Source: Phallusia mammillata (lineage: Eukaryota). From it: a DNA stretch of 64,000 nucleotides. A model generated the notes under the pieces. The model did not search any database, was not told the DNA's origin, and saw only the letters and a list, made by a program, of their open reading frames with translations. The position numbers and the translations under genes were made by a program. The stretch is taken from NCBI GenBank assembly GCA_965637545.1, contig OZ281496.1, positions 7,316,001 through 7,380,000 of the forward strand, in the 5' to 3' direction. Below, piece after piece: positions 17,422 through 64,000 of this stretch. Within the stretch, counting starts at the first letter, position 1. Each line of letters begins with the position of its first letter.

Positions 17422-20400
17422 ATGAATCATATTTATGTCAATAAAGACCCCGATGCTTACGAAACCATCGAGTTTAAAAAAGGACAAACTGTAAACAAGG
17501 TAGAAATTGTCTGTTAGAATGCTTTGTTAACCTTGAAGAATAGTGATTAAAATCAATGTTTTTGTCTGTAAGGAATTCAAAATCAGGAGATCCTCTCCAT
17601 TGTGTATGCAGGATCGCCAACTGACGCATATGATGAATCTATCGAAACAGTAAGAAGTTGTGGTGAGTTGTTCATTGGACGGGTCTCACAACACATTTGT
17701 GTCTTCTTGTATTTAATCACGAATGACTGGGGACTAAACTAACAATGGCATTTTTTTCTGTCTACCAAATATATATTAACTTGGATGGTAAATTGTTACC
17801 CATTCTTACGGCCGATTTGATTGTTTCGATTTCATTTATTTCAAATCTTGCTGTTATTCTGTCTTTTGCCCAAGAAACGTTTTATTTCCTTTTCAGGATA
17901 GCGATAATCGTACAACATTCTCTATTTGCACAGAAACTAAAAAATCGGCTGACAAACGTCGCAATATTGCTTCAAACAAACAACACACATCAATTTTGCT
18001 TGTAGTTTTGGTTTTCGCAGTTGGTATTCTGGCTGCTTTGGGGCTAGTTTTTGGAATACTCAATTTCAGAGAAAATCAGGTTCGTGATAAATTTGTGTGG
18101 CATACGCATTTTCAGTTGTTTGTATATTTGCATGTTATGTTGTTTCAGAACGGAAAAGAAGAAAGCTATCAAAGTAAGTCTTGTGCTATCAAATCCGCTG
18201 TTTGACGTTTTAAAAACCCAATTGCAAAAGTTTAAATAACTAAAAGTAATATCCATGCTCTTTGCAGTCACGTGCACTGCAACATTTTAATGCATGCACA
18301 GTACTGTAGTATATGTGTGATGAAACAATCTCCAAAAATGCAACTACACTTTGTTAAAAGCAGTTTGCTTGGAACCCACTTGAAGTAACAACAACAGCAA
18401 CATGAAAAAATAAGCCTTGTTTTTAGCAAAACCACCGCTTGGTACTTTCCCCAATCCTGCCCGTTCATGTGTTGAACTGAGAGATGCTGGGTTTAAAGAT
18501 GGAATTTACGTCATACAACCGTCACTCAAACCGTTTGAGGTATTATAAATTAATTTCTTTATTATTTCATTGAAAATATGCGATGTTATGACAACTTTTA
18601 CAATTGATTGGGTTGTGAGATTTCTGCGGGTTAAACAGTTTGGCTAAAAATGTTTTTTCTCTCGATTTTTATGTTTTATTTCAACATGTTTTTAAACACT
18701 CGTTAGAATTTGTAATTTATAATCTGTTCTAAAAATTTAGCTGTCGGCAATTTAAACGTTTTTTAAAATGTTTTACACATCAGTGCAGATGGTGACGTGA
18801 GATAGGTCATATTCGCAAGAGTAGCCATCCAACGGCATTCCAGTTTGTTAGCAGTAACATGCAAAAAAGCCACGTCTAACCTATTCTGTTTACTGCCACA
18901 ACTTTAGGCATAGACCACAGAGTGAACTGACTCACAACGGCCAAGCAACTTGTTGGGAACCTAAGTAAACTCGACCTTAAGTGAACAAGGGTCACAGTAT
19001 CAATTTAAAGCATCCAGCAAATTAATGACAAGCTGCGGGCAGTACACACTGTTTCGACCTACTAGGTCTTGTAGGTGCAGCTGGTGACGACAGATAGGTC
19101 GCATTGGCTACTAAAGTCAGCCAGTTTGTTGGGAGTTACAGTTCACTCTGTGGACAATGCCCAGCTCTGGCATGGACCAAAATAGGTGAGGCTTTATAGG
19201 TCGAAACAGTGTGCCCTGTCTGCTTTCAGAAGTTTCTTTGATTGATAAAAAACATTTATTTATTGGGCTGGGTGCATGTTGTACTACAGTTGTCTAAACG
19301 TGTTCGGCATTTGGGACAAATGTTTGGTGTTTAGGAATATTTTGCGATTTCATAAGAGTTTGTTTTATTTTTAGTTACGTTTATTAACTTCCTTATACGA
19401 CTTCTCTTCGTTTGATTCAAGGCGCATGCAAATTTAAAAACTTAAAAATTGGCTAATTTCGTACATATATTTCTAATTAATCCATGGGTTAAGTACAAAA
19501 ACAATAAATAAACACTTTAAACTATTTGTTTTGTATTACCTGTATTAATATTACCAAGTTTTACCAGCTAACCCACTTTTTTACTTAGGTTTATTGTGAC
19601 ATGATAGCTGCTGGTGGTGGATGGATTCTCGCGGCAACTATCAATGACAACAATTTCAACATGACAGAAGCTCATGGTGGATCGTGGTTTCTTACGTCGT
19701 CAAGCAATCAGGATGATGTTTTTGGTACTAGGTTGTTCTACTGTTTCAGAAAATTATTTTTGAATGCATTTTTAATTCTAGACTACCAAAGTTGGATGAA
19801 CACACATTCGTTCGGAACATTTGATACTTGCACAAGATCGGATTTTAAAAGCCAAGCTTATTATGAATACCAGGCAAATATTTTGCTGTATAATGCTTTA
19901 TATATATATATATATGTATATAAATGGTAGTTTTTAGGGAAAAGACATTATGTTACGTCACGTATTAAACCAAACACCACTGGAGGCCACCAGAGAGCAG
20001 AGTATTTTGCAATATCAAACTGTAAACCAATTTATGAAAACATATGGAGGAAATTTACATCAAATGTTTAACTCTCGATATCAACTAAAACCAGAAAATG
20101 GTAAGACACTTGATATATTGTTTTTGCAAATAATTTAATCCAATCAATTACTGAATACTTTCTCTGTTTTTTTACTGGTATTGCAAATTTAACTGCCAAT
20201 GGAATGTTTGTTATCTGCGATCGTTTTAATCTTTTTAACGTAGTTCCATGTAAAGGTATTTGGCATTAAACCACCGTTTTTTCAGTTTTTTATCCCGATG
20301 TGAAGTCGATGTTGGATCGACTTGAGGCAAAATCTACTGAAATCACAAATTTAGTCACTGATTTCTATCCTTACGTTTATGGCACTCAACCTTCCACACT

Positions 20401-22123
20401 GGAGGATAATAATTTGTTTGGAAACGATTACGGAATGCAGGTAAGTTTAATAAACTTTTATGTTTTTTTTTGAATAATCAACAAAGTGTTTTATTGTAGA
20501 TTTACTTTAACCCAGATCAAAATTGTTATCCATACGAATATGAAGCAAATTGTCCAAGTGATTATGTGGATTATGGTTTGGATTTCGGGTAAACCAGAGA
20601 ATTTTATTTTTCTCCTGTTCTTAAGTGTTAAGTTTATATTCACCTGTAAAGATGCGACCTAGGCAACATGATGCGATCAAGTCGGAAAATGCATCCATTC
20701 TTTGCTTTGTTTGCGGTGGGAAACTTCGATCAATGCGTTGACCATTTCTTCTGTCGAGTAAACAAATATTGAATTAGTACATTGTCGACGGTATTGTATT
20801 TTATTCATATTTGTTGTTTTAAGGTAAGATCGTATCGACCAAATACAGACTTAACAGTTTCATACAAAAGAAATCACACTCTCAACAATTTCTTCTTACA
20901 TTATGAAGCACAATGTAGATATGGGTCATCGTATGCCAGCTTGTGTGATGTTTGGTTTTATGTCAATAATGCGGAGGTACGTTGGGTTATTTAGCGCAGA
21001 ATTTTTGTGGCACTTTTAGGGTTAATGAATTAAGTCGAATTGAAATCTGAAACCTACCTTCGAAACTGCGTTATTTCTTTGTTTCAACAATTAGTGCGTC
21101 AGACACAAGTACTGCTATAAAAGCTGAAAAAATATTAACTTGACTACACTTTGCTGTTTACCGCATAGAAATGGAAATCATCCGAAATACCAGCAAAACA
21201 ATCATACAACTCTACATCCACATTATACTATTTTTTTGGATGGCAAATTGATGAAGCTGCATCTAACATACTTTTCGGTTACACGATGGTTTCAAGGTAA
21301 ACTGACGTAAACTGCAAGTATTGTAACATTACTCAGAAACATCAGAATATTTGATGTTCCGAAACCACTTTTACTTTGCAGAAGAAAGGGTGTTTTGATA
21401 CCTAACACAGAGATCAGCGCTCTTATGTACAAAGTTTTGGAAATTGTTTCAGAAACTGACATTTTATGTAAGTAAAATACTTCAGTTTCTGTGAACATCG
21501 AAGTTTTTCGTAGACACCAATTTTAAGACGAAACAACACAATTCCTGCCTTGATTGAATGTTCAAAAACTATTCTTTCAGTTTTTAATTTTATTATTTCA
21601 GGTCCGGATTGTTATTATAGTGATGACGTACTTTCAGTACCAGTTCAATTTTCCATCGGAAACGACTCAGTGGTTAACTCCATGCTGCCACCAAGTGTAA
21701 AACCTCTACCGACCGGTTTTGTTCAGTTTCGTGCTTATGGAAGAACAGGGAGCGTCTACGCAATGTGTCCTGCTGTCAAGTAAGAAATGGCTAAACTTCT
21801 GTAAAGTTGTTTCAAACATACTTATTTAAATACCTTTGATCTGTTTAGAGTAAACGATTGGCGAAGTGAATATGTTTGTATCGGAGGAATAAACAATCCA
21901 GACTCACCCCGCTTTGATGACTGCAACGATTTTACAAGTAATTTTTTTTTATTTTATCCCTTTTTTGAGAATAAATATTTGCTAGCTATTTTTTGAAATA
22001 AAATTGTAAATAACAATAGATTGGGACGGATTTCTAGAAACTACGTTAAACAAAACAACACCAGTCGATTATACTCATTCTCAGAGAGATTTGGATTCTA
22101 CAATTATGATATTTTATCGATAA
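17422..22123 (+). CDS. Type II transmembrane intelectin-like protein, copy B, apparently intact (~646 aa, 17 exons)
   Basis: Exons 17422-17499, 17587-17649, 17897-18079 (TM), 18149-18173, 18427-18539, 19589-19724, 19782-19873, 19938-20100, 20286-20440, 20500-20588, 20652-20757, 20824-20976, 21169-21296, 21382-21467, 21602-21779, 21849-21937, 22020-22123 join in one frame. Intelectin motifs SCVEL..DGIY, YCDM..GGGW, WMN..SFG, DFKS..YY, GFVQFR, CIGG, C.DF, final IFYR-stop. The first three exons are less certain. Confidence 0.8.
18900..19220. mobile_element. Penelope-like pLTR remnants in inverted orientation inside an intron of copy B
   Basis: CACACTGTTTCGACCT (19046) and AGGTCGAAACAGTGTG (19198) are reverse complements and carry the GGTC-GAAAC half of a hammerhead; 18905-18940 is rc-similar to 19125-19165. 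Confidence 0.4.
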
Positions 22124-22527
22124 ATATGATAATCTGACAAGCTGAAAAAATTTTTTATCGCCTAATTCATTTCAAGTATTACTGTTTTATAATCTCAGAA
22201 TTAATACATTTTAACTCGCATTCCCTTACTGATACTGACTTTCGGTATTGATTTGTCACATTGCGTGAAATATTATTGGATAATTGCTAATTTATTGATA
22301 AAATCGGTCCGAAAATGTTACTCAAAATATCAGCATTTCGAGTAATATAAATTACTTTCCGTTTTCTTGAACGTATGTGATTGTATATGAGTATGCTAAC
22401 CTTTTTGAACGCATTTTAACTAATTTTGTCAACTGAATATTATCTTCTGTTCTGTGGTAAATATTACTTCGCTCCAATATTTGAGTTTGTTTGTATTTGT
22501 TGCGACATATTATCTTCTAGCTATCTT

Positions 22528-22655
22528 CTGACTGATTCTGTTGGCAATTGAGACACTCCTCTCAAATTTCGAGTCTTTTAACAATTTGCACAGTTATCGT
22601 CGGTATGCATGGCGGCTGTTGGAGGTTCAGATATTGCCAATCCACGACATTTTCT
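22528..22655 (+). mobile_element. Distal pLTR fragment of the Penelope family at 802-3381
   Basis: Near-identical to the reverse complement of ~802-930. Confidence 0.85.
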
Positions 22656-23578
22656 GATTTACCCATATAAGTTAGTGTTGTTTTATTATAAGTTATAATC
22701 TTGTTTTATTATAACACTGCTGTCTGTGTCTAGAAATAGTATAATAAGTATTTTAAGAAATTAATTTTCGTCAGCAGCAAATTGATTAGTATTATATTAG
22801 CATAACCTTGAGGCAGGGATGGCGTTCCTCTCCATTAAACCCCCGCTACACGTTTAGGCGATTTGTCGTCCACGTTTCTTATGTAGTCAGGACGTTAATT
22901 GGCAGTTGGGGTATATGGTTATTACCATGCGCAGGAAATGTAGCCCTAAATTATACATAACTGTAGCGGCCTCCCATGTGCGCAAATTTCGTTTCCAAAC
23001 TGCAATGCCGTTTCAATACTTTTGCAAAATTAAACACATTAAATTTGTTTAACCCTTTAACTGCCTGGTTCTAAACAGCAATAAAAATCGTATTAGTGCG
23101 GATATATTTTACAACTGGGGTGCGTTTGAAAGCTTATGCATATTAGCTCCAATTTATTCGAAAAAAATGATATGTTAGTATCTGAAAAAAATTAATTACA
23201 CTCACAAGCCTCGCTTGCGTTTTGTTCGTTATGTTACCATTAGAATTATGCTACATCTTACGGATAAACAACACTACCAAGCACGAGATACACTTTTTTC
23301 TGTCACTAACCAGTGTACGCTGCAGCGATTGCATCACAAAAGTATTGTGACATCATAACTCCACAACTAGATAGACTGTTTGTGACGTGACGTTCACAGG
23401 TGTTACATCCATGTTAAGCAAGGTATGCCAATATCCGCGAAAGCTTTTACGAACGTTAACGTGTAACTTAGTATGGTTGGCAATCATGGTGCGCCAAGCC
23501 TATTGAAGGCGTTACACCAAATTAGCCGGTCAACAAGCATTCACCACCATGTGGCAAGGTGTAGGTTAGAAAAATCTA

Positions 23579-25922: not shown

Positions 25923-28900
25923 AACCTGACAAAGGGCTTCCGGGAGAGAAGAGTAAAAATTCATCTAAGAAACAAGAAACGTCAACTTTGACTGTGGTTT
26001 TAATTTCCGCAGTGGGTATTCTGGCTGCTTTGGGACTATGTTTTGGAGTCCTCAATTTCTTAGACACACAGGTGAGTGATATTTGCTAAAAAATATACTC
26101 AAAATTACCAAATCTTGTGTTAATTCTTTTGTTTTAGAATCAAAATGAAGAAATCTATCCAAGTAAGCCCAAGACCAAAAAATTTCAAAAAAAGAATTTT
26201 GATTTGCTGTTTTGCATGTTACCTTAGAAGTAAATTCTGGTTGAAACTTTGTAAAACTCACTGATTATGTTTAATCTTTAGTTAAATATTTTAATTTGGC
26301 AAAGAAACAGGTGCATGAACAAACGACTCGCAAATATACAATTACTGTCTATTAAATAAAGTTCGTTTGACAACTCCTGAAAGCACAGCAACATTATGAA
26401 AGTCCTAATTATGAATATTATTAATATCTTTTACTCCATAGCAATACATACAATTGGTGAAACTTTTTTTAACGCAACTGATTCTGTTGCAACAAAACCA
26501 CCACTTGGTACTTTCCCCAATCCTTCCCGTTCATGTGTTGAACTAAGAGATGCTGGCTTCAAAGATGGAATCTATGTCCTACAACCGTCACTCAAATCGT
26601 TTGAGGTTTTAAAACGAAATTTGGAGAAACTTATTTTTGAAGAAACTTATTTTTTGTAAAATACAGTTAGCAAAACAAGTTTATGTCTAAGCAATATTTG
26701 CAAATTTTTAGAAAGACAATAACCGTTCTTTTCTTTTTTCCAGGTTTACTGCGACATGATAGCTGCTGGTGGTGGATGGATTCTCGCGGCCACTGTCAAC
26801 AACATTATGCCTGAATCTGATGATCAATCATGGTTTCTTACGACGAATGATAATCACCAGAACAACTTTGGTCAAAAGTTTAATTTGTCTACATCTTGAC
26901 TATTTGATTGTTAGCCTACATGTTGTTCAATTGCAGATCACCAAAACTGGATGAACACAAATAACATATGAAAATTGCACAAGATCAGATTTCAAAAATC
27001 AAGCTTATTTTGAATATCAGGCAAACTATGTATTTAATTAGGATCTTAAGTTTATTTTACACCGGGGTATTTTTTAGGGGAAAGACATTATGTTACGTCA
27101 TGTCCCAAATCAAACACCAGTTGAGGCCAGTAGAGAGCAAAGTTTTCTGCAATATCAAACTGAAAACAGTTTTATGGGATACTATGGAGGAAACTTGCAT
27201 AGAATTTTCAACTTTCATTACCCATTGAAACAAGCTAATGGTAAGATCAAAAAGTTATGGTTTAAAAATTCGGCAGATCAATACCGTATGAATATCTGTT
27301 GCATCATCAAGTATGTCGAAGCTTTAAGTGAAATTTGTACGCAGGACATAAGCTTAACAAACCCAGCAAGTTTCAAACCTAACTTTTTGATTTGATTTTT
27401 CATAAGCATACCAATGATTAATCTTTTTTGTGCTTAAAGTTTTGTATCCTGATGTAGGTTCAATGTTGGATCGACTTGCTGCAAAATCCAAAGAAATTAC
27501 AGACTTAATTTCTGATTTCTATTTTTACGAATATGGTCCTAGCTCATATTTGCTCCATGATGAAGGACTGTTTGGAACCGAACACGGAATGAGGGTAGGT
27601 CAGAATCGTTTTCTTATTCTTGTGATAAAAGGTGTTTGTGTAGATTTTATCCAGCGCCGGTCAAAGATGCAATATAGACAACTGTCCAAATGACTATGTT
27701 GAGTATGGGTTGTATGATGGGTAGGTCAAACCTACATCAGTTATCGTTTACACTTTAGTTTTACTTTTTACTTTAAAACTAAAGATGCGGAAATGGGAAC
27801 CTGATGCAATCAAGCAGAAAGATTCATCCCTTCATTGTTTTGTTTGCTGTGTCAAACACGGAAAACTGTTTGGACGATTTCCTTTTTAAAGTACGAAAAT
27901 GTTACGGTAAAAAGTTTCAAAAATAAAAATCAAACTTTATCATTTACTACTACAGCTGTACGGTCGACGACCAGACACCGATAAAACAGTTAAATATACC
28001 GGAGACCAACGTCACAACAATTTCTCTTTATATTATGAAGCGGGTTGCAGATATGGTTTGCCTTATGCCAGCTTGTGTGATGTTTGGTTTTATGTCATCA
28101 ATAAAAAGGTCCATTGCGTTTGTTGCAAAATATATTTTTAGTTTGGCTTGTTTTTAATTTACCTAAATTTTAATTTTTGTTTTGTAGGATTGGAAATCAT
28201 CAGACTCTCTTAATGTTAAGTTTACAAATTCTTCATCCAGTAAAACCTATACTTTTGGTTGGAAAATTATACAACCAGTATCGAACACACTGTTTGGTTA
28301 CACAATGGTTTCAAGGTGAATTGATATTTGTGTGAATAAGGCAAAATAAAAGCAATGAAGTTGTGTCAACAAAATTGTTTCATTAGGAAAAATGGAAGTT
28401 TAATTAACCAAACAGAGATAAACGCAGTCACCAACAAAATGCTGGAAATCATTTCAGAGTTTGACAATTTGTGTACGTTAATCGGTTATTACTCTTGGTA
28501 CATGCAGTTCTTTCAAACTTTAATCGGTTGTTGTTTCAGATCCGGACTGCACTTATGATGATGACGTACTTTCAGTACCAGTTCAATTTTCCATAGGAAA
28601 CAATTCAGTGGTTAACTCGATGCTGCCACCAAGTGTAAAACCTTTACCGACCGGTTTTGTTCAGTTTCGTGCTTATGGAAGAACTGGGAGCGTCTACGCA
28701 ATGTGTCCTGCCATTAAGTAAGTAAGACTGGTGTATATATAATGATTTGTACTAAGATAGAGCAGGAGTACAGAAAACCTTGTTCGCTCTGTAATGTCTT
28801 TGTAACAGCTATTGTTTATTGTTTTCGTAGGGTAAACCATTGGCGAAGCGAATACGTGTGTATTGGAGGAATGAAAAACCCAGACTTTCGATATTATGAT

Positions 28901-29093
28901 GACTGCAGTGATTTTACAAGTAATTATACAAGTTATTTTTTTTGGACATATTTACGTACTAGTTTGTAAAACATTTTTGTATTAAACAGACTGGGACGGA
29001 TTGTCGAAAACCTTGTTGCACGAAACAACTCCAGTTGATTATGCTCATTCTCAGAGAGATTTGGATTCAACAATTATGATATTTTATCGCTAA
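25923..29093 (+). pseudogene. Intelectin-like receptor copy C (TM exon to stop), frameshifted
   Basis: All exons from TM (TLTVVLISAVGILAALGLCFGVLNF) to IMIFYR-stop present; 8-nt deletion near 26962 gives TGA at 26969. Confidence 0.8.
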
Positions 29094-31233: not shown

Positions 31234-31396
31234 NNNNNNNNNNNNNNNNNNNNNNNNNNNNNNNNNNNNNNNNNNNNNNNNNNNNNNNNNNNNNNNNNNN
31301 NNNNNNNNNNNNNNNNNNNNNNNNNNNNNNNNNNNNNNNNNNNNNNNNNNNNNNNNNNNNNNNNNNNNNNNNNNNNNNNNNNNNNNNNNNNNNNNN
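31234..31396. other. Assembly gap
   Basis: Run of N. Confidence 0.99.
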
Positions 31397-38330: not shown

Positions 38331-38361
38331 GTGGAAGAAGGGTGTTTAACTTTATTTGGGT

Positions 38362-39072: not shown

Positions 39073-39073
39073 C

Positions 39074-46136: not shown

Positions 46137-47632
46137 GGACAATGATGTTTCACTTTCACTTTTGGGAACTATAAATCTTAAGGAAAAACTTAGTGAGGCG
46201 TATATAGACTTTCAATTATTGAACACAACAAAAAAGTGGAAAAAAATCGTGATATTTTGTCCAAAATAATAGACTGCATTTTGTTCTGTGGAAATTTTGA
46301 AACTCCCTTACGTGGACATGATGAAAAAGATGAGTATTGATATAATGGACATGTACTGTTTGTCTAAACAGTAGCTGCTAAATTGCTTCACAGGAAGTGT
46401 TTCTTAAGAATGAACATTCTACAGACAAGATAGTAGTGACCACCAAGCACATCCTATTGTTGACAAATAAATACTAGTTACTGAAATGAAAATGTTTCTG
46501 TAGATCTGATGTTCATGATTACTTTGAAAATAATCTAGATGATGTTTTGACAAGTGAAATTACTAGGATGAAAAATCCTTTTTGCTGTTTCCATGAGTCC
46601 TTTGAAGGCAAAGGCAAAACAGTTTGGATACAAACCTTTGTTAGGAACACCATTATTTCCAAAAGATTTGCACTTGCAGTGCTAGTACTACTAAATAGAA
46701 AAACAGTTTCTCAGTTGTCATTTGGAATGAAGGAATAAGCTATCAATTATCATGCCCAAACTGTAACTTTATGATTCATTTTGGTTGTAAAAAGGAAGCA
46801 CAAGGTTTAATAATATGGTTTAAATGTAAGTGAGAGTGTTGTAAATTTTAAAGCTTGAAGGAGTTTTGCACTTAAAAAAAGCAATTATAAGCTATTTGCC
46901 AGCAAATAAAGCAGCAATTATAGCAGTTAAAAATCTGAAAGACAAATAATAGTCTGTACACAAAAATTCAAAAAAGATGTTAAAATAAACAAGTTCTGAC
47001 ACAAATGTAAAGTGGTTGTTAAATTTGTCAGTTATGATACCAATAAACAGCTGTATGGCTAGTTTTTTTGTGTGACAATTATAATCTGTGAAGTGTCATA
47101 TAATATGTTGAAAACGCTGACTGTGACCATAAGGTTACTTAAATGAAACATGACCATTTTTTTAAATGTTGTCGAACTGAAATACTTCGACCTTTTTCCA
47201 ATCATCACTTTTTTTCTATATTCTTGTTGTGTTTTACCGTATTTACAACCGCTTAGTTTCGAGTCTGTGTCACGTGTGTTTTTGTTCCACATTATTACTG
47301 CATGTTATGGTGTTTAGCCGTCGCTGTGCAAGTAAACAAAATACACAAATGATATCGTCTGATATTTACACTCGTGTACATTATTGCGTAACAAAACTTA
47401 CGTCACAATGGAGTTTCTAATTAAGGTTTGTATTACTTGTTTTTCTACACAAAACAATGGCTAGAAAACTATAAATGTAGGTTTTCTATATATTGCCAAG
47501 TAATATATGTTCAATAATGGCTAAAATTTTGAGCAGCACCCCCACAAATTTTAGGCACGAGCCGCCACTGGTTATTATCTACTGTATTGCAAAATAGTAA
47601 TTTGCAATAAATATAGTGTAATTAGCAGTCTG

Positions 47633-47858
47633 TTTCGTTGTTGGTGTTGCAAGAACTAGGCGGGCAGTTTTGATCAGCAACTTGTTTGTCAGTTGATTTG
47701 AAGTCGTACGTCAGCGTTTTGGTTCACATTAGATAAAACAAACCATTTCGTTGTTGGTGTTGCAAGAACTAGGGAAGCAGTTTTGATCAGCAACTTGTTT
47801 GTCAGTTGATTTGAAGTCGTACGTCAGCGTTTTGGTTCACATTAGATAAAACAAACCA
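47633..47858. repeat. 113-bp tandem duplication
   Basis: Two copies differing only at TAGGCGGGCAG vs TAGGGAAGCAG. Confidence 0.92.
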
Positions 47859-48133
47859 GTAGGCCGCAGTAAGTAAACAAGTTTTTATGGTATAACAAAA
47901 TAAATCACACTACACTTGGAAACAACCAGCAACTCCTGCTAAACATGTTGTTCGAAATGTTGTATTGATTAATAGACGGGGGTTGTTTTTTTTGCTTCCC
48001 ACAGTAGAAGTAACAACCTTTAAACAACATCCTCACTGTTTGCTGGTTGTTGGAGACTGTGTGCATTTAAATAAAACTCTAGTGGGCAAGTTATGCACAT
48101 ACTTATGTTTTTCATTTTCTGTAATAAACGCAA

Positions 48134-48163: not shown

Positions 48164-49468
48164 ACTATTATATTGTGCTTTCAAGTTTGAAAAACACCTC
48201 CTGCCATCAATGTTCTGCTCCTATTTTGATCTCACCGCTAACATTCATTCTCAGTACAAACGTGTGAGTGCGTGTATATGTGTAAATTTTGGTGTAAGAA
48301 GGGGTAGCTGACACGGTGACCACAGAGTCTTTCGCTACCCCGCACATTTCTCTTTTTCAATTTTTTTCGTATTTTTCTTTTGTTCGGATATTTCGTGCGA
48401 AATAAACTTACTTACTTACTTACTTGCATCGATAGTGAAACAATTTTTCTAACCACGCAAAAACTGATCTTGATTATATAAAACAATGAAAAACTGTACG
48501 TTCAAACTTGAAAAAAAAGCTGAGTAAAAAATGAAAAAAAGCTGAGTAGCAAGTTACAAAATTATTCCGGAAATTGATATCTGACCTTGTGATATTTCCA
48601 ACATTGTTGAGTTGAGTTTATTTCGCTCGGTAAAACAATTGCACTGAATTATTCACCTTGCCGGAGATAGCTGCGCAACGTTGAGACGTTAAAAAGCGCG
48701 ACAAAGTGGAGGACACAGTTGGTGGAGAGATGAGAAACGCGCTGCAGCTACACCGTAAGTTATACCTACGCCCCCAGGGCAAACAGCGGAAAAAAGGCTC
48801 CAGCAAACACACAAAACATCGCATATCTCCAGTTCTAGTACAGGTAGAAAGGTGAAATTTCACACCTGTACTAAGTCGAACATGCAGAATTTAAAAATGC
48901 AAAAAAATTTTTTTGCCACAAAATTAAAAAAATTTTGGGCCGAAATATCCCGATTTTGGTAACTCAAACTAAAACGGGAAAAATAAAATATTGCTCATTT
49001 TTTTTGGAAAAGCTTTACGTTCCTGAAAATCTAAGTGATATGCGCCAAACTTCGGGGCGGCTGGTTAAAAAAATGCAATTTATTTGAAAAATTTTAGGAC
49101 GTAAAAAGGTGGCAGTTTAGGTTTGGCGCTCAAATTTTGGGGTCAAATCTCAACAGATTTGAATGAAACTTGCAGGAAATGCAAAAAATGGTCATTACTT
49201 TGCACAGAAAAAATATCTACTTAAAAATACCTAATGGTAAAAATTGATAACCGATTAAATGTTATTACTGCCAAATTACATTTTGGAATAAGTACGATCT
49301 TCAGTTTATCTTTAAAAAACGCAAGAAATTGACACTTAAATGCAATGAATCACACACATATGCAATTATGAGGTATTTAGGCTACTATATTGTAAAAATC
49401 AAAAGAAAACATTGATTCTGAGCGAAATATTATTATATGTATATTTGTATTAGCTGTTTCTTTTTTAG

Positions 49469-49723
49469 GGTGAATGATTGGCGAAGCGAGTTTGTTTGTA
49501 TTGAAGGCATAAAGAGCCCCGAATCTCTCTACTTGGATGACTGCAATGACTTTACTAGTAAATTATCTGTGTGTGTTTTTACATTTTTTTGGTTCAAAAA
49601 TGTTTTGGCACCAAACGCAGATTGGGACGGTTTGCGTACACCTCGTTAAGTGGAACGACTCCAGTTGATTATGCTCATTCTAGGAGAGATTTGGATTCAA
49701 CAATTATGATATTTTATCGATAA
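49469..49723 (+). pseudogene. Intelectin-like fragment F (last two exons)
   Basis: VNDWRSEFVCIEG..DDCNDFT exon and WDG...DYAHSRRDLDSTIMIFYR exon with a 1-nt frameshift. Confidence 0.82.
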
Positions 49724-51537
49724 AGTTTATCAAAATTGTGATATTTTGTGCAAAAAAGGTCAGAAACAAATGTGTAACCCATAGGACTGAATGTGTTTTC
49801 TTTAAATACTTTACTTCCGCTTTAAATTTCTTTTATCGTGGTTGATGATTATGTTGTATTACATTATTACTAATTTCATATTTTAAACATAAAATTTCGT
49901 TGACAAATAAAGTCTTAATTGCTTTTTTATTAAATCTACAATTTACTTTCATTACATCTTAAATTGCCATTGTAATCAAACACAAACACGTTTTTGTTGG
50001 TAGATATTGTACTTACTTGCTTCATTGCAAATTAGTCATTTCACAAAATTTAAGCTCGAAATTTCTGCCATTGTTAACATGTTAAATTGTGTTGCTGATA
50101 ACAGAAGTCACGTGACTGAACTGAGCTTGAATCTGTAAATAAAGAATATTTGAATTATTTTGATATGCGGTAGTACGTCGTTGGTTTAAACCACGTTTGA
50201 CAGTTATCGATTTGTGGGGTGAAAATTTGCAATGCCTCGTATTGTATGACATGTTGCAAGATTCAACGCATTGACAAAAACCTAACAATTCTGTAATTTA
50301 ATCTGTTCAAATCATGCTGGTTGTGTGGATATACGAATTTAATCATCCTTTTTTATCAAGATTTTATTCATTGGTCCCAACTGGACCTGACTAGCGAAAC
50401 AGTGCAATTTAAGTGTATAAAACAGGACACGCTCATCATTTGTTTATTATTATTTGATAAAAAAAACTAATGTAAAATATATTTAAACAGTAGAAGAACT
50501 GGTTAGAAATATTTATTTCAGTGGTTTGCAGTCAAGTGACAAACCAAAAATCCAAATGTTAAAAAATGTGATTGAATGAAATATCATAATCATGTGCATT
50601 AGGGGAAAGAAGCACACTTGGACTCAGCAAATTATATGTTGTGTTTACTATAATGTTTTATTATGGCAACATCGACAGTTTTCTCTTGTGGTTTGTTATT
50701 CGAATTAAATTCTGCTTGTTTAAACAATCAGATAACTTAAATAATACAAACTTAGCCACAGTGGTCAAACTTTTTATAACGCCCGCTTTATAATGTACAT
50801 GCAGAAAATATCTTGCATCTGTTACAAACAAATCTCCTGCAGTTAAAATAGCATCGTTGCGTTTAGGCAACACACAGAAACACCCCCCCCCCAAAAAAAA
50901 ATAAAAAGTAAAATCAACTTGCATCGTTAGACCGTTCCTCCCAATGAAGGTGATACGAGCAATGACTTACTGGTCAAGCTCTCCGATTGTGATCATCACC
51001 CTTCTTCGGGAGCATCCCACTTCCTCTATTAGTTTACGAAGATACCTAAGAGCTACCCGTAATCGCAAAATTCGACAACTTGAGCTCCTGTACTCTCAGA
51101 ATCACATTACTAGTGCGGGCACTGGCTTTATCTCACATAAATCTTGATTTTGGGGATTAGTGCAGAATGCTCAAATCTTTTTAGGCTCACTGCAAATCTC
51201 AAATCACCACATATAGGCTACTGGTAAACTGCATTTACAGCCCACACTTCTACCAGTCCTTGGCAGATTGAAACTAAGCTATTTGAACAATCGCTAATTT
51301 TCAACTTTGCTGTTGATATAATCAAAATTCATAACTTTTTTCTGTGTACGGTTTTAAAGATTATAGACTCCCAAATACCATCGCGTAATTGAAATGCTTC
51401 TTTTTCTCTGTTCTTACGTTCTTTTACTATCATTTCTTGGAACTACTAGCTACTAGCAGTCGGTCGCTGCGGAAACCACACAGTTGTGAATTATGACAAA
51501 ATAAAGTGCGTTATTACCCCAAATGTATATATTACAC

Positions 51538-52549: not shown

Positions 52550-55500
52550 ATGGATGATGGTGATGTAGATATTGGTGCTAATGCATATGAAACTATTGAA
52601 GAAAGACATTTTCGTCATGCTCCACCTAATATAAGACACTCAAGTAAAGACATTTTATGAAAGTTTATGGTTAGTTTACGAACTGCAACATTATCAATGC
52701 ATATAAAATAAGTTTTATTGTAGTTATCGAAATGTACAAAACAGAAAAAAGATAAACAAATTAAATTGGCTTTAAGTATATTGAGAAAAAGTTAAATCTG
52801 CATTATACCTTTATTTTGATAATCACTTCTTCCACTTAAATGTAAAATATTTTTCGTATCTAATCATATATCATGCGTTTATGAAAAAGAATTTCCGAAG
52901 ACATTCTCAAATGAGTATGAAAATCCCTTACCAAAGTTTCATAGAGAAAATGGAAATACATTGAGTCCAACAGATGCGTCTGTGCAAAAAAATGGTAAGG
53001 GCGTTTTAGAAAAAGTTTATCAAAGGTGAAATTAGTTAAACTTTTCTGTTTCAACTTAGAAAATGTCAAAGTTCAATCCAAAAAAAGTGAAAAAAAGTGT
53101 GTGCAAAAACAGAGCTTCTCGAAACTGAACATAATCTTGGTGTGTGTGATTGTAATTCTGGCTGCTTCGGCGCTAGGTTTCGGAATACTTTACTTCACGA
53201 AAGACCAGGTGTGTAATATTTTTTTTGTAAAAGCTATGCAATGTTTCTATGCAACAAGATTCTTTTGCTTTAGGACGAAACGGAAGAACTTTATGAAAGT
53301 AAGTCAAATATTCGAAAACATATTTGGGTCAACTAAATAGATTTAAAAGTTATATCAATGCTAAATGTCAGAAACATGATCGTACAATTTTTGAAAAACT
53401 GTCCAAGAAATCAATATTTTAGTTTTGTTTGAAAACTCTCTATAGGTAATTATTTATTACTTTCTCATACGTTTACAAATACAAATGATATTTGTATAGC
53501 ACCACTGACAAATGGACAAGCAGCTTTAAACACAGCTGAATATGTGACAACAACCCCCAAACTTGGTAATGATGTATAGTTGTTGTTCCAGTGTTGCTAA
53601 ATTATTTCTTTAGCACTGCAGACAACTGGACAAATCAACTTTAACACAACTGGATCAGTAGCAACAACACCACCGCTTGGTACTTTCCGCAACCCTGCAA
53701 GTTCATGTGTTGAACTGAGAGATGCTGGTTTTAAAGATGGAATCTACGTCATACAACCGTCACTCATATCGTTTGAGGTATTTACCAAATCATTTTACTC
53801 ACATTATCGATGTATTTGGAAGGAAAATAATAATCAATGCATAAATGTATTTAGACAGTGGAAATATTGAAATATATAAAAATTTAAGAAATACAAATGC
53901 ATTTAGGTTTACTGTGACATGATAGCAGCTGGTGGTGGATGGATGGATTCTCGTGGCCACAATAAACAACAATAATTTCAATATGACAGAAGCCTATGGT
54001 GGATCGTGGTTTCTTACGACGTCAAACAATCACCAAAATTACTTGAGTAAATTTGGCAATGTAACACAAATTGCTACAGCTCATTTTTACTATTCAATTC
54101 CAGATTATCAAAATTGAATGAACACAAATTCATTCGGAACATTTGACAATTGCACAAAATCAGATTTCAAAAGTCAAGCTTATTACGAATATCAGGTAAA
54201 TATTGTGTGTTGTAAAAAGTGGAACATTTTTTGCGACTACAATTTTTCAGGGAAAAGACATTATGTTACGTCATGTTCCAAACCAAACTCCACTGGGTGT
54301 CAGCAAAGAGCAAGGTTTTCTGCAATATCAAACAGAGAACGGTTTTTTGAAAAATCATGGAGGAAATTTGCTTAATTTGTTTACTACTCATTATCCATTA
54401 AAATCTACAAGTGGTAATGTACTTAACTTTGCGATATTTCGTTTTTGACAGTGGTAACACTATATTTTTTGTTCTTGAAAATTATGTAAATTTGGTGTGT
54501 GCTAACAATCATTTTTGTAAGGGTGATTTATTCGATGCCAGTTCTGGATGATTTTAATTGATTAATTTTATATCCAAGCTTTCTTTCCTGATGTAAAATC
54601 GATGTTGGATCGACTTGCTGCTAAATCCAAAGAAATTACAAAGCATATTTCTGATTTCTATTTTTATGATTATGATACTGGTTCAATCTCGCTACGCGAT
54701 AACAACGTTTATTCCTCTGGTGGAATGCTGGTAATATATCCACATGGCGGTATTTTTGAGGAACCATAAATAAAAAGTGTTTGCACAGGCAAACATTGGA
54801 ACAAGCCAATCTTGCTATCCCAGCTCACATAAAGCAAATTGTCAAGACGGCTATATACATTATGGTTTGGATTATAAGTAAGTTAATTTTTTTAGTTTTA
54901 CTGGTTTTACGTAAACTTCTACTGTTTTGCTTAACAATATAGATGTGATCTTGGAAACATGATGCAATCGAGTCGAAAAACGCATCCTTTTTTTGCCTTG
55001 TTTGCGGTGGGAAATTTTGATAATTGCTTTTCCAGCATGAGCTTTTGGGTAAAGGAATAACGCATTAACAATTTATCTGAAGTCATTCCATTGTTTTATG
55101 ATTGATATGTATAGGTTCGTTCTTTCCGACCAAATACAGAAACCATAGTTTTGTACGAAAGAAATCACACTCTCAACAATTTCCTTTTACATTATGAAGC
55201 ACAATGTAGAAATGGGACTTTGTATGCCAGCTTGTGTGATGTTTGGTTTCATGTCATAAACACTGAGGTAAGCTGGATTCGAAGCCTGTTTGTGGTCAGT
55301 GTTTCTTCTTCTTTGCAAATGCACAACTCAATCCATTTTCTAACCAATTCGGTAATATATGAAAATTTTCATCAATTTTACCCAAATACGCTCGAGTTAT
55401 ACAAGAACGAAACTAAGTGAACTCTTTAGCTATTTGATCGACATCTAATATTTATCACTAAAACCAAAACTGTAATTATAACTGAGAAATAAATTCAAAT

Positions 55501-56566
55501 TAACGTGTTATTTGTTGTTTGTCACCTAGAATTGGAATTCATCTGCAGCGCCAACTACAGAACCGTACAAAATAACATATTTATCACACTATTATTTTGG
55601 ATGGAGAATTCGTGAAGCTGTATCTAACACACTTTTCGGTTACACAATGGTTGCAAGGTAAACTGTTGTTCACTGCTGAGTGTAAAGTGATATTACTATA
55701 TAATAGTGATCTTCATGTTGTTGTTATATTTGACTTTCCTGCATAGAAAAAATGCTACTTTGATATCTGAAACAGAGATCGACGCTGTTACCTACAAAAT
55801 ATTGGAAATTATTTCAGAAACTGACAACTTCTGTGAGTAAAGTGTATTTTAGCAACAATCAATCACAATGCAGTTTGTTTTGTTAAGAAATGTTTGTTTT
55901 ATCTTACAATCAATTTGAAACATTTACTAGTGAAAGTAGTTTGTTTTGTAAGGAGATGTTTATGCAACCAGGTTTGAATAATTTGCCATTCATGCAATTT
56001 TAACTATTCCAAATCAATCGTCTGCTTCTTGCATTACTTTTTAGTCTAATGATTATTTTAAACTTGGTTCGATTCCGTGGTTAACTCGATGCTGCCACCA
56101 AGTGTAAAACCTCTACCGACCGGTTTTGTTCAGTTTCGTGCTTATGGAAGAAGTGGGGGAGTCTACGCAATGTGTCCTGCTGTTAAGTAAGTCCCTCTTC
56201 AGGTACATCAAACTGTACAAAAATACAACTGTAAATAAAGTTGATTTAAAGTAAACATTAAAAAGTTAATGGGCTCTTATTGGAGCCTAACGTACGCGAA
56301 ATCTGAATTGTTTAGAGTGAACGATTGGAGAAGTGAATTTGTGTGTATTGGAGGAATGAAGAATCCAGACTCTCTCTACTTGGATGACTGCAATGATTTC
56401 ACAAGTACATAACTTTTTCTTTTCCATTTGGGTTTTTCAATGAAACATATTTGATAAAATAGATTGGAATGGATTACCAAACACCGTGATGCTAGGAACA
56501 ACTCCAGTCGATTATGCTCATTCTTAGAGAGATTTGGATTCAACAATTATGATATTTTATCGATAA
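52550..56566 (+). pseudogene. Intelectin-like receptor copy D, full length but disabled
   Basis: ATG 52550, TM exon ending 53208; GGAT duplication at 53937-53948 (+4), TGG to TGA at 54115, CAG to TAG at 56525, 5' half of the PVQF exon deleted near 56065. Confidence 0.85.
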
Positions 56567-57124
56567 GTATGTTCTGAATCATTGCATTAACTATCTTTAT
56601 GATGAAAATGTAGTGCTAGTTATTGTACATTTCTAATGAATTAATGTGATTTCTTTCTTACGCTTTTAGTAACCTTGTACTATTCGCGTTTAACATGCTT
56701 TTGTCCAGTATTAATAACAACTTTCTGCGCTATAAATGATTTTGTCATTGTTAATTAAATAATTTGTGCAAATGCAACAACGGCATGGCAGTCAAAACTT
56801 ACTTCTGCAGTGAGGCTGTGTAAATGCGAAGGCAATACACTGTAGCGATTGCGATATAGTTTGTGCAAACTTTGCAATAATTGTTTACCAAAGTAGCTCG
56901 TTTTTGACTCGCTAGCTCAAAGGCTACGAGGAAGTTAAAATGCATAGCAACCAAATCCCACTGTATTGACAAATCGTGTTCGGACTGCTGTACCCTAGCC
57001 AAACCACAGGAGTGCATTTTTTTGTCTTACTTGTTGCCTATCAAAAATAAAATAAAAATGAACAAAATATAAATATTGGCGACAGATTTTCGCGAATGCT
57101 TACCAACTCTGGCATTATGCCAGC

Positions 57125-57487
57125 CAGAAGTGCACACTTTACTTATCCTTTGCATTCGATAATATCACACGGGTCGCAATGCCATGTGCCAACACGTAGG
57201 CAACGTTGAGCACGAATTGCGGCTAATTAGATCCCTTCAAATAGTACGTCATGCGTTCGCTCTGTGTGCAACCGATAGGAATGATCGCCCTACGACAGTA
57301 ACAGAAGTGCACACTTTACTTATCCTTTGCATTCGATAATATCACACGGGTCGCAATGCCATGTGCCAACACGTAGGCAACGTTGAGCACGAATTGCGGC
57401 TAATTAGATCCCTTCAAATAGTACGTCATGCGTTCGCTCTGTGTGCAACCGATAGGAATGATCGCCCTACGACAGTAACAGAAGTGC
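57125..57487. repeat. 177-bp essentially perfect tandem duplication
   Basis: Unit starts CAGAAGTGC at 57125, 57302 and (partial) 57479. Confidence 0.92.
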
Positions 57488-58755
57488 GCATACAAATGAA
57501 GGGAACAATCTAACGATATGTGATTTTCCTGGGACACTATACAATGTCAAAATTTTTCTGCGCCCAGGAAATGAAATAAACAAATATTTAAAAAAATATC
57601 TTATCTTATTATAGTACGAAACTTTACAGAAATTATATCTGTCGCCCAAATATCATTACAAATATGACAGATAATAATAAAACAGGCAGCTCGTCGGTGG
57701 ACTAACGCATTCAGGCGTTGCCCGTCCACCGAGTATAAAAACAAAACATAAACGTTTTTGAGTCTTTTCGTAATTAATGTGTTGCTCGAACCGGTCATTT
57801 GTTTCATGGTTCAAATTAAGTTACTGTTTGTAAAAGCGACGAAAAACCGTTTTTCGGAGTCACTGCCCGGTTCAATTTCTCCTGCTTCAAGTACAATGTA
57901 ATAATGTAGTAATCTTTTCACCAATCATTTCACTACAGGTTTGCCACAACAAATATGGCAAAATTTCAACCGAAAGACTGTTTTTCTAGCACATTTCTAA
58001 CGCATTATTTCTGAGATTTTGCACACTGTTTCTACTTTTGAACTAGAACATATCAAACATTATGTCAGAACAGTTTCTATTGTTTTAATTTAATACTTTG
58101 CTGGTTGGTTGTTTGTATCATTTTGGTCTTCGGTAGCCGATAGCGACCAAATCGCTAGCACACAAATGCAATAAACTTATGCAGTTGAGCAGATATGTTT
58201 ACTGCGCGTTTAATGCACGTTGATAACATATGGTATTGTTATATGCGCCCAAGCAGCATATTTCCGCTTTGAATCAAATCCATTGTTTCAAGCGACTGGT
58301 AACTGATCACATGAACAGCGTACGTTCCAATGCATATGAGTAAACCTATGTAAAACATACAAAGCGTTTTAACCGCAAAGTAGGATTGTAAAACTGACAA
58401 CCTTAAAAGATATTGAACCACCGAGTTGAATTTTTTGTTACATTTCTATGATTGAAACCAGCGTTAACCGAATTAAAAAAGTATTAGTAATCAGCAGTCC
58501 AGCGTTTGTAATAAATATGGTAAAAACTTACAGTTGATGTACAACCTTAAATGAAAATATTTAGAAGTATCTCAGTTAAAACTTTTGTTCTTACAATAAA
58601 TCGTATGAGAACCTCATTAAAAACATTGCATTGTTTCGAACCCTGCGTTGCTGCAGTGCGCTTGCTTTGATTTTGCTGCATATGTGTGACGTAATATTTG
58701 TAATATTAAAACATGAAGGTCAGATCGGCGCTGAATGTTGACGTCAGATGCATAT

Positions 58756-60892: not shown

Positions 60893-63800
60893 CAAGAATT
60901 ATGGTGATATTGGTGCTAATGCCTACGAAGCTGTTAAAATGCACGAAGGACAATTCATTCATGCTCCAGTTAATAGAGTGATACTATGTAAGTGTTACAT
61001 AAAGTTTATGGACTGCAAAAAAAATAATTTTATTGTATTTTTTGAAACTTACAAAACATAGACAAAACGCAACAAGATAAATTGGCAATAAGACCATTCA
61101 TCAGAACTTAAATATGCATCATAACTTTATTTGATGATCAGTTCTTAAACTTGAATGTAAAATATTTTTTGTATCTGACCAATCACAAATCTTGTATTTG
61201 TAAAGCAGAATTCCAGGAAACATCCTCAAATATGTATGAAAAACCAATACCAAGGTTCCATACAGAAAATGAGTCCCATAGGTGCATCTGTGCAAGAATA
61301 TGGTAAGAAAAAAGTGTTTCAGAAAAAGTTTATCAAAATCGTAATATCGTTAAACATTTTTGTTTCAACTTAGAAAATGCTAAAATTCATTTGAAAAGAA
61401 GTGAAAAAAGTGTGTGAAAGAACAAAGCTTCTCGAAACTAAATATTGTATTGGTGTGTACGATTGTAATCCTGGCTGCTTCGGCGCTAGGTTTTGGAATA
61501 CTTTACTTCACGAAAGACAAAGTGTGCGATGTTTGTTTTGTAAAATATATGCAATGTTTTTATGCAACAAGATTTTTTGCTTTAGAACGAAACGGAAGAA
61601 GTTGATAAAAGTAAGTCAAATATTCGAGAACTCACTTGGATTATTAATTTGCTTTAAAAGTACTAACATTGCTGAAACATGATCTGAAAATTGCGTACAT
61701 TTTGAGAAAAGTAGTAAAAAAATTACAAAGCTGTCCAAGGGATCACGTTAGGTTTACAAATTTGCTCGGAAATTCACGGTACAAAGGATAATAATTAATT
61801 ATTCTTTCATAAGTTTACAAATACAATTTGCATAGCACCTCTGACAATTGTACAAGCAGCATTAAACACAACTAAATATTTGACTATAAAAACAACCACT
61901 TGGCAAAAGTGTATAGTTGTTGTTTCGAAATTCATTTTAAATTAAGTGTTGCCCAATTATTTCTTTAGCACACCAGACAACTGGACAAATAAACTTCAAC
62001 AATAGTGAATCAGTGGCAACAGAATTACCGCTTGGTACTTTCCGCAACCCAGCGCATTCACGTATTCAACTGAGAGATGCAGGATTCAAGGATGGAATCT
62101 ACGTAATTAAAGCCACGCTCAAATCGTTTGAGGTATTGTACAATTCATTTTCCAAATAATTTTTTTCTTTTGTAATTGTTTAAACATGTTTATCAAACCT
62201 TAAATATTAAACTTATCAGATATTTGCAAAGAAAAGAAAGCTACTTACTAAAAAAGTTGCTTTTGGAGGAATCAATTATCATTATCAATGTATTGAGAAG
62301 GAAAATTATAGAAGTTTTGAAAATGCGTAGACTAATTTCTTTTAATTTTTCGAAAATGATTTAGTTTTGAGATGCATTTAGGTTTACTGTGACATGTCAG
62401 CTGATGGTGGTGGATGGATTCTCGCGGCTACTATCAACAACGATAATTTCAATATTAGTGAAGCTTACGCTGGATCGTGGTTTCTTACGACGTCAAACTA
62501 TCACCAAAATTACTTGAGTAAATTTGGCAATATGACACAAATTGCAACAGCTATTTTAATTTTTATAATTCCAGATTATCAAAACTGGATGAACACAAAT
62601 TCATTCGGAACATTTGACAATTGCACAAGATCAGATTTCAAAAGTCAAGCTTATTCTGATTATCAGGCAGATATTATGTGATGTAAAAAGTGGTATATTT
62701 ATAACAAGTACAATTTTCCAGGTGAAAGATATTATGTTACGTCATGTTCCTAACCGAACTCCACTGGGAGTCAGCAGAGAGCAAGGTTTTCTGCAATATC
62801 AAACAGATAACGGATTTATGAAATATTATGGTGGAAATTTGCACAATTTGTTTAATAATCATTTTCCATTGAAACCAACGAGTGGTAATATAATTAACGT
62901 TTCGATACGTTTTTCTTGACTCTGGTTACAACTTATAGATATTTTTTCTGTAAAAAAATGATTCAAATAACAAATGAAGCATACAAAGTAAAATAAATCG
63001 CCTTTGTTGCTTGTGGGTTTGTATGTTCACAACTCTCTTTGAAAAGATGATTCATTTAATTGCATTTCTGGAACCCTTTGTTTCATACATTCTAGTTTTG
63101 TTCTCTTTTCAGTTTTTACCCCAAAATAGATTTGATGTTGGATCGATTTGTTGCACAATCTTCAGAAATCACAAACCGTATTTCTGATTTCTATTTTTAC
63201 GGTTATAGTATTCATTCAAGTGGGCTTTTTGATAACAATGTTTATTCGTCTCACGGAATGGGGGTGAGTTACCAGCATGATCGTTCTGTAGTGTAATTAC
63301 AAATTAAAGTGTTTACACAGGTGTCTAGCACAACACACTCTTGCTATCCAAGCTCGTACAAAGCAAATTGTCCATCAGGGAGTTTGCGATATGGGTTGAA
63401 TTATAAGTAAGTCAAATATTGCCTTTAATTTTACGTTTTTACTGGTTTTACGTCAACACTTACTTTTCTTCGTAACCAAACAGATGCGACCTTGGCAATA
63501 CGATTCGATTAAGCAGAAAAACGCACCCCTTCTTTGCCTTGTTTGCTATGGGAAACTTGATCACTGCTTTTTCAACATGTTCTTAAGGGTAACAGAATAC
63601 GGCATTTACCGTAATAATTTTGATTTTTATGTTTGATAATTTCAGGTTCTTTCTTTTCGATCAAATACGGATTCGATAGTTGTATACAAAGGAAACCGCA
63701 CTTCTAACAATTTCTTTTTACATTATGAAGCACAATGTAGATATGGATCGTCATTAGCCAGCTTGTGTGATGTTTGGTTTTATGTCATTAACACCGAGGT

Positions 63801-64000
63801 AAGCTGCGTGCGACACCTTGCTTCTGGTTGGTGATTTTTGCAAAAGCGCTAACCGAATCATTTTCAAACCAATTTGCTAATATACAAACATTTTCACCAA
63901 TATCACCCCAATCTGCTCGAGTTGTATTAAGTACTAAAGATGATGAAGTCATGAACTATTTGATGCGACAATCGTTAATACATCTAATGTTTATCATTAA
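60893..64000 (+). pseudogene. Intelectin-like receptor copy E, runs off the window, probably disabled
   Basis: Exons parallel copy D; 11-nt deletion at 61270, A6 vs A7 at 61404, conserved Cys changed to Arg (HSRIQL), T5 vs T6 at 63113; no clear ATG. Confidence 0.7.

Follow-up and report, generated by a model that had tools for sequence, protein, structure and literature searches.

Intelectins are regarded as soluble, at most glycosylphosphatidylinositol (GPI)-linked, innate-immune lectins from tunicates to humans, and to our knowledge all characterised members are secreted via a cleaved N-terminal signal peptide. Can an intelectin also be built as a membrane receptor? The question is raised by a stretch of 64,000 nucleotides of the ascidian Phallusia mammillata (contig OZ281496.1, positions 7,316,001 to 7,380,000, forward strand; hereafter the window), for which an earlier note, made from the letters alone, had proposed a tandem family of type II transmembrane intelectin receptors. 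We analyzed this cluster and in particular gene A, whose product is termed pA. We consider it probable that the cluster is a birth-and-death group of an ascidian-specific intelectin subfamily, in which the intact gene A encodes a single-pass type II glycan receptor.

The intelectin origin of the sequence was evident from database searches. The exon at 19589–19927 matched human intelectin-1, Xenopus XEEL, and lamprey serum lectin in the PDB (phmmer, E ~1e-6), and a later exon of gene A matched XEEL around GFVQFR. Exons encoding intelectin-like sequence were confirmed on the plus strand between 17.4 and 64 kb, the region of the earlier note, and all the intelectin-like pieces in the window were found on that strand. 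The strings that the note had quoted (WMNTHSFGTFDTCTRSDFKSQAYYEYQ|GKDIMLRHV, TGFVQFR, CIGG, CNDF, and IFYR) were all present in the gene A model. The closest database proteins were all from Phallusia mammillata.

The gene structure was determined by spliced protein-to-genome alignment, in which GT/GC..AG introns were required and split codons were scored exactly. Three Phallusia proteins (P0001, P0002, and P0026), retrieved with the exon at 19589 in an exhaustive HMMER search, served as guides. Gene A (17422–22123, plus strand) has 17 exons, canonical splice sites, no lesion, and an uninterrupted open reading frame (ORF) of 640 amino acids (aa), and it is the only intact copy in the window. 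Its exons, all on the plus strand, are as follows.

17422–17499, plus strand: exon 1, with the start codon and the first tail motif MNHIYVNKDPDAYETIEFKKGQTVNK; an in-frame stop lies four codons before the first ATG.
17590–17662, plus strand: exon 2, with the second tail part ILSIVYAGSPTDAYDESIETVRSC; the acceptor is at 17587 or 17590.
17934–18079, plus strand: exon 3, a basic juxtamembrane stretch followed by the predicted signal-anchor helix (~17981–18067); no Met before the helix.
18149–18182, plus strand: exon 4, 34 nt, encoding NGKEESYQSKS, where P0026 has KEKEEVYQVPV (spliced alignment).
18427–18539, 19589–19724, 19782–19873, and 19938–20100, plus strand: exons 5–8, the N-terminal intelectin half (PARSC...YCDM..GGGW...GKDIMLRHV), from the PDB matches, the spliced alignment, and an RNA contig at 19936–20050.
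20286–21467, plus strand: exons 9–14, a beta-rich insert of ~240 aa, from RNA joints and colinearity with P0026 and P0001.
21602–21779, 21849–21937, and 22020–22123 (including the stop), plus strand: exons 15–17, the C-terminal intelectin half (TGFVQFR, CIGG, CNDF, W, IFYR and stop).

P0001 and P0026 begin with a sequence homologous to exon 1 (MN...NAYETI...). The summed length of exons 4 and 5 is divisible by 3 nt, and the frame is preserved from the anchor to the head. The intron after the exon ending in ...EYQ has a GC donor (CAG|GCAAAT) in gene A (19874) and in two further copies described below, B (27021) and E (62667), and a GT donor in copy D (54196). An RNA contig beginning at 19936 is consistent with the use of the GC donor in gene A.

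Is gene A transcribed, and is its tail joined to its anchor in the transcript? RNA evidence was provided by one small run (X1, word depth 0.5–6). Four X1 contigs, some of them spliced, matched gene A exactly (0 mismatches), with GT..AG joints at 17662|17934, 20440|20500, 20588|20652, and 20757|20824. The first of these joints splices tail exon 2 to anchor exon 3; the contig covers 17592–17661 with 0 mismatches, and the frame is open through the junction (...DESIETVRSC|ETKKSADKRRNIASNKQHTSILLVV...). An in-frame junction at 17649|17897, which was the first choice of the aligner for exons 2 and 3, was dropped because the RNA supports 17662|17934. Three of the RNA joints fall inside the insert, which is also contained in P0001 and P0026, and the insert is therefore present in the mRNA. 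Over the exon 15/16 junction, the loose end of an RNA contig from a near-copy reads ...AVK|VNDWRSE.

Two other runs (X2 and X3), with 745 and 414 contigs aligned on 5 kb, were discarded as transcript evidence. Their joints had non-canonical ends and short sides, and introns were covered, and they were treated as genomic DNA with many paralogous contigs. The X2 and X3 contigs with at least 95% identity piled onto a few conserved exons within 17300–22300, for example 21642–21808 and 19137–19303. These pile-ups suggest many paralogues in the genome, or a repeat at 19137–19303.

The next question is how pA would sit in the membrane. The protein can be divided into the following segments.

Residues 1–66: a polar tail with four Tyr (HIYVNK, DPDAYETI, IVYAGS, DAYDESI) and 0 N-glycosylation sequons.
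Residues 52–66: a basic stretch with a net charge of +5.
Residues 67–95: 29 uncharged residues with a 19-residue Kyte-Doolittle mean of 3.17; the next 15 residues have a net charge of 0.
After residue 95: a short linker and then the intelectin head, with all six sequons (6/6) and 15 of the 16 Cys.

There is no N-terminal hydrophobic segment in pA, and the hydrophobic stretch is internal, after a tail of 66 aa. Across the family, the corresponding segments comprise 21–29 uncharged residues with 19-residue Kyte-Doolittle means of 2.4–3.25, and most members have an N-terminal flank charged +2 to +5. Computed alongside them, canonical intelectins from lizard, shark, and Ciona had signal peptides that reached at most 1.9 on this scale, and the signal peptides of the secreted members of the insert-bearing family lay at 1.0–2.1. 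For structure, a complete Ciona relative, P0028 (XP_002120751.1), was modelled with AlphaFold2 (AF2) from a 31-sequence alignment and stands in for pA. In this model a helix at 16–48 is followed by a disordered linker, with a predicted local distance difference test (pLDDT) score <50 for residues 49–70. The length, hydropathy, and position of the pA helix, together with the positive-inside rule, make an uncleaved signal anchor with a cytosolic N-terminus a well-supported prediction. The type II layout with a Tyr-containing tail, claimed in the earlier note, was thus corroborated by the RNA joint between tail and anchor, the lack of a Met before the helix, three Phallusia proteins of like build, and the hydropathy and charge asymmetry of the anchor.

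The hydrophobic segment could instead be a cleaved signal peptide, in which case these proteins would be ordinary secreted intelectins and the 'tail' exons would be 5' untranslated region (UTR) or mis-joined. The intelectins studied so far are secreted, exon 1 of gene A is without RNA cover, and P0001 has a Met within its helix. In gene A, however, RNA joins exon 2 in frame to the anchor exon, and no Met codon occurs from the beginning of exon 2 up to the helix. Translation must accordingly begin further upstream, and the helix cannot form the protein N-terminus. No transcripts beginning at the hydrophobic segment were seen in the X1 contigs. In addition, paralogues and database proteins have kept the tail ORF with its NAYETI motif, and a helix of 21–29 residues with a Kyte-Doolittle value of ~3.2 is far above the signal peptides of both canonical and secreted members. 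A cleaved signal peptide is thus very unlikely.

It is also conceivable that pA is a type II precursor from which cleavage in the stalk or linker releases a soluble working lectin, the anchor being used for delivery only. The linker of pA has no dibasic or other evident cleavage site, and such a release would leave the conserved Tyr motifs of the long tails without a role; the disordered linker or stalk after the helix (residues 49–70 of P0028) and the secretion of sister lineages, which have a signal peptide and collagen-like repeats, speak for it. On balance we consider release unlikely. If pA is a type II receptor, its head would be displayed on the cell surface and its N-terminal tail would be cytosolic. 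The Thr-rich stalk of its paralogues, which is probably O-glycosylated, would be represented in pA by a short linker only.

What, then, is the head made of? The earlier note had aligned the ectodomain end to end with intelectin. This did not hold, as six exons (20286–21467 in gene A) insert ~240 aa between the two halves, a domain that the note had left unmentioned. The insert is placed between '...YQLKPEN' and 'CYYSDDVLSVPVQFSIGND...', in a surface loop joining the intelectin halves. The C-terminal half of pA could be aligned to human ITLN1 residues 225–293 via P0028, and the Pfam family Fibrinogen_C gave a partial match over the first ~50 profile positions only. The P0028 model (mean pLDDT 86.8) superposed on human intelectin-1 (4WMQ) with a target-normalised template modelling (TM) score of 0.88, and this superposition spanned the insert. 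In Foldseek comparisons with 4WMQ, 4WMO, and 7E1E, the model had an E value of 1.9e-21 and target-normalised TM scores of 0.88–0.89.

The insert itself (residues ~236–470 of P0028) was modelled as a separate beta-sandwich with pLDDT >90. Among viral structures in BFVD it resembled phage proteins that are uncharacterised or tail-fibre-like (best E 3e-11 over 246 columns, root-mean-square deviation 3.0), and in the AlphaFold DB it matched a cluster named 'IgGFc-binding protein N-terminal domain-containing protein' (E 1.6e-14). A Pfam search with six family members gave no match for the insert; its only hits were partial ones to Fibrinogen_C and COLFI. Five insert segments had nothing under E 0.2 in PHROGs, and the ESM Atlas gave no usable lead for the insert. 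The motif DGGxDM(F/Y)DxGN is common to the inserts of Ciona, Clavelina, and Styela and is degenerate in Phallusia.

Whether such a head could bind glycans was assessed at the ligand site of human ITLN1, whose residues, reportedly described by Wesener et al. 2015, are N260, E262, H263, E274, W288, and Y297. The ITLN1 numbering was checked on the 6USC chain (chain position + 34). At these six positions pA has Arg, Glu, Tyr, Asp, Trp, and Tyr, respectively. Across the family, E262, W288, and an acidic residue at position 274 are kept, and positions 260, 263, and 297 vary. By this comparison, glycan binding by pA is plausible, possibly with a different chemistry, and the head would bind its glycan via a partly conserved intelectin calcium and aromatic site.

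Another explanation is that the head is no longer a calcium-dependent glycan binder and serves in adhesion or in tunic or gamete interactions, or binds a ligand via the insert, and is not an immune receptor. The replacement of N260 and H263, both variable family-wide, would fit this explanation, as would the resemblance of the insert to phage tail-fibre-like proteins and to IgGFc-binding N-terminal domain proteins, both of which are binding modules. The intelectin fold is nevertheless intact, and E262, the acidic residue at 274, and W288 are kept throughout the family, which argues for a lectin. We regard a non-lectin head as a minority possibility, though one of some weight, and prefer to read pA as a glycan receptor.

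The tail of such a receptor may carry signals. The DPDAYETI sequence in the pA tail fits the YxxPhi pattern and loosely resembles a hemITAM (half of an immunoreceptor tyrosine-based activation motif, ITAM), and YVNK fits a YxN motif. NAYETI is conserved in copy D, P0001, and P0026, is represented by YEAV in copy E, and is lost in P0002. An N-terminal YE(T/G)x motif was found in Phallusia, in the long tails of Styela, and in one Ciona protein. Because the motif is absent from short-tailed members, the function of the tail may be specific to one subfamily. In the proposed mechanism, the YxxPhi or hemITAM-like motif would couple binding to endocytosis or to tyrosine-kinase signalling.

How many such genes does the locus hold? 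Only four exons encoding an anchor helix were found in the window, in copies A, B, D, and E, with a helix of 20–29 residues after basic residues in each. A lenient tblastn search and a scan for hydrophobic ORF pieces in the window revealed no fifth copy with an anchor and a stalk. Besides gene A, the following copies and fragments were identified.

25947–29093, plus strand: copy B, with an anchor exon, one Thr-rich stalk unit, and a head with insert; 8-nt deletion in exon 7 at ~26963.
52550–56566, plus strand: copy D, with a tail, an anchor, two stalk units, and a head with insert; a pseudogene.
60897–64000, plus strand: copy E, with a tail, an anchor, two stalk units, and the head to exon 12; it runs into the end of the window.
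13220–13988, plus strand: fragment Z, exons 6–9 only, with exon 6 shortened and a 1-nt deletion; it lies upstream of the start of the region covered by the earlier note.
49467–49724, plus strand: fragment C, exons 16–17 only, with a 1-nt deletion; the sole intelectin piece between B and D.

No exons 1–2 of copy B were found in 22.2–25.9 kb by lenient tblastn, and its helix is not preceded by a Met; copy B is a probable pseudogene. In copy D, YCDM..GGGW is disrupted by a 4-nt insertion at ~53936, stop codons occur at 54115 (TGA) and 56525 (TAG), and exon 15 lacks its first 63 nt. Copy E, probably also a pseudogene, has a frame change in exon 3 at ~61400 and a 1-nt deletion at ~63559 in exon 11, and the conserved Cys of ARSC is replaced by Arg. 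Of the tandem receptor family proposed earlier, four copies bear an anchor, but only A is intact, and B, D, and E have frameshifts, stops, or missing exons; the window thus has a single working gene with pseudogenes around it and not a set of working receptors. The Thr-rich stalk that had been reported for B, C, D, and E was recovered in three of them, whereas an anchored copy C does not exist. A and P0026 have no stalk unit (~22 residues, ...TTGQ..NTTE..V.T..P), B has 1, D and E have 2 each, and P0001 has 3.

The proteins of A, D, and E share 54–73% identity, and A is 54–57% identical to its neighbours D and E. The three are old duplicates in a birth-and-death array, of which a single gene works. 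One may ask whether the whole locus is a graveyard, in which gene A is non-functional as well and the RNA represents noise or paralogues elsewhere. The damage to B, D, and E and the very low RNA depth would be expected of such a locus, but gene A has retained 17 intact exons with canonical splice sites even though it is only 54–57% identical to D and E, and four RNA contigs, spliced ones among them, match it with 0 mismatches. That gene A is dead too is hardly credible, and we take it to be the working gene of the array.

The anchored layout was also found in predicted proteins from several ascidians. Word-indexed protein searches with P0001, or with an alignment of the three Phallusia proteins, retrieved nothing beyond the queries; this outcome is uninformative, as candidates were limited to 8000 and low-complexity words had probably swamped them. 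Tail, anchor, and intelectin occur on one chain, with a stalk, in the Phallusia database proteins P0001, P0002, and P0026 (the last being UniRef A0A6F9DJZ..), and CAB3262707.1 and CAB3262769.1 are Phallusia entries of the family. An internal or near-N-terminal anchor and an insert-split intelectin head are predicted in Ciona intestinalis XP_002120751.1 (LOC100177669), XP_078486252.1 ('intelectin-2-like'), and F6QVV8 ('cortical granule lectin-like'), and likewise in C. savignyi, Clavelina lepadiformis (LOC143468938), and Styela clava (XP_039256396/7, 'intelectin-1b-like'). The identity of pA was 57–61% to the Phallusia proteins and ~30% to those of other genera (head), and the tails of the predicted ascidian members ranged from ~17 to 105 residues. 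A sister set from Styela, Clavelina, and Ciona (P0042, P0043, P0044, and P0047) has a signal peptide, a Cys-rich stretch, and collagen-like Gly-X-Y repeats, a layout similar to that of ficolin but on a split intelectin head.

In a maximum-likelihood (ML) tree, the insert-bearing family was separated from the canonical intelectins (support 99/98), and pA and the Phallusia proteins grouped with the long-tailed Styela members (96/95). The short-tailed anchored forms of Ciona and Clavelina grouped with the secreted collagen-like forms. All the anchored members in the databases are predictions or transcript-derived entries that are uncharacterised and unnamed or called 'intelectin-like'. We found no description of a membrane-anchored intelectin family in the open full-text literature (subscription-only papers on ascidian intelectins were outside our reach). 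The claim that no such family is known thus holds for the literature, and not for the databases, where the architecture is already present in Ciona, Styela, Clavelina, and Phallusia. What appears to be new is a predicted membrane-anchored X-type lectin with an inserted domain, which is ascidian-wide and already public as unnamed sequences.

Several points weigh against reading pA as a working glycan receptor. The RNA contigs leave exon 1 and the exon 4/5 junction of gene A uncovered, and their depth in the single small run was very low. Topology, surface display, and glycan binding rest on sequence inference. In pA, Arg takes the place of the calcium ligand N260 and Tyr that of H263, and both positions vary across the family, so that the binding mode of intelectins may have changed or disappeared. 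The motif in the tail strictly matches neither a hemITAM nor an immunoreceptor tyrosine-based inhibition motif (ITIM), and P0002 and the short-tailed members from Ciona and Clavelina lack it. Finally, three of the four full-length copies are damaged, so the locus itself is under weak constraint.

The cluster lies in AT-rich animal DNA (window GC ~35%), in which introns are frequently just ~60 nt long. The two assembly gaps and a mobile element are listed below.

31234–31396, no strand: assembly gap 1, an N run in intergenic DNA; the nearest intelectin exon ends at 29093.
35190–38330 and 38362–38883, minus strand: a long interspersed nuclear element (LINE), with an uninterrupted 1046-aa ORF2 (endonuclease and reverse transcriptase) and a 173-aa ORF1 matching Pfam Baculo_FP_2nd.
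39074–39273, no strand: assembly gap 2, an N run that abuts the 5' side of the minus-strand LINE element.

Both gaps lie in transposon-rich DNA between copy B and fragment C, at distances of >2 kb (gap 1) and ~10 kb (gap 2) from any intelectin exon. No exon is touched and no frame crosses them, and their sole effect is that the spacing from B to D is uncertain. On either side of the intelectin cluster are mutually paralogous ORFs with multiple C2H2 zinc fingers (11447–12313 and 41451–41981, both on the plus strand; also 2–247), and the DNA just 3' of each zinc-finger ORF is similar (12447–12758 and 41968–42180). A 284-aa ORF on the minus strand (44912–45766) has a DUF7041 domain. Tandem repeats were seen as near-identical adjacent ORF pieces at 57030–57546, 47582–47909, and 43607–43978, with periods of roughly 177, 110, and 90 nt, respectively. 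A repeated element at 758–1400 and 2839–3520, in opposite orientations, has a partial copy at 22513–22705, just 3' of the gene A stop, and looks like a dispersed transposon remnant.

If our reading of pA is true, X-type lectins have also been recruited as cell-surface receptors, in parallel to the C-type lectin receptors and FIBCD1. Ascidian immunology would gain candidate receptors from a family that is rich in paralogues and whose genes turn over rapidly, and the inserted domain would be a second, unexplained binding module within a lectin fold. The family is directly testable, with public sequences in Phallusia and Ciona, both of which are laboratory models. A bolder proposal, which we put forward tentatively and consider possible rather than probable, is that ascidians have a large, fast-evolving family of type II intelectin receptors that combine an X-type lectin, a phage-tail-fibre-like beta-sandwich, and signalling or uptake tails. 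Such a family might serve in pattern recognition or allorecognition as a germline-diversified receptor system, for which no animal counterpart has been described.

Compared with known systems, the gene A family shares the hallmarks of human ITLN1, Xenopus XEEL and XCGL, and lamprey serum lectin on both sides of the insert (RSC, YCDM..GGGW, GFVQFR, CxGG, CxDF, W, and (I/L)FYR). It differs from these intelectins in having a predicted signal anchor and cytosolic tail in place of a cleaved signal peptide, a domain of ~240 aa in the loop after 'YP(V/L)K', and, in some copies, a Thr-rich stalk. Among membrane lectins, FIBCD1 is a type II protein of vertebrates that has a fibrinogen-related domain (FReD) and is an endocytic receptor for acetylated glycans, a role of the kind proposed here for pA. 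The two are alike in their short N-terminal cytosolic tail, predicted for pA, single anchor helix, and C-terminal fibrinogen-related lectin head. FIBCD1 differs in its canonical FReD head and in possessing a coiled-coil and a polycationic region, and it is without the intelectin C-terminal half or the insert. The likeness to type II receptors is one of architecture, and orthology with FIBCD1 is not implied. Dectin-1 and CLEC-2 are type II C-type lectin receptors with a hemITAM (DEDGYxxL consensus). They likewise combine a type II anchor with a stalk and a lectin head, and an acidic stretch followed by YxxI lies near the N-terminus in gene A (DPDAYETI). Their lectin fold is unrelated, and the gene A motif is off the DEDGYxxL consensus, variable among paralogues, and absent in short-tailed members. 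With its intelectin head on a type II anchor, pA would be the intelectin counterpart of FIBCD1 or Dectin-1.

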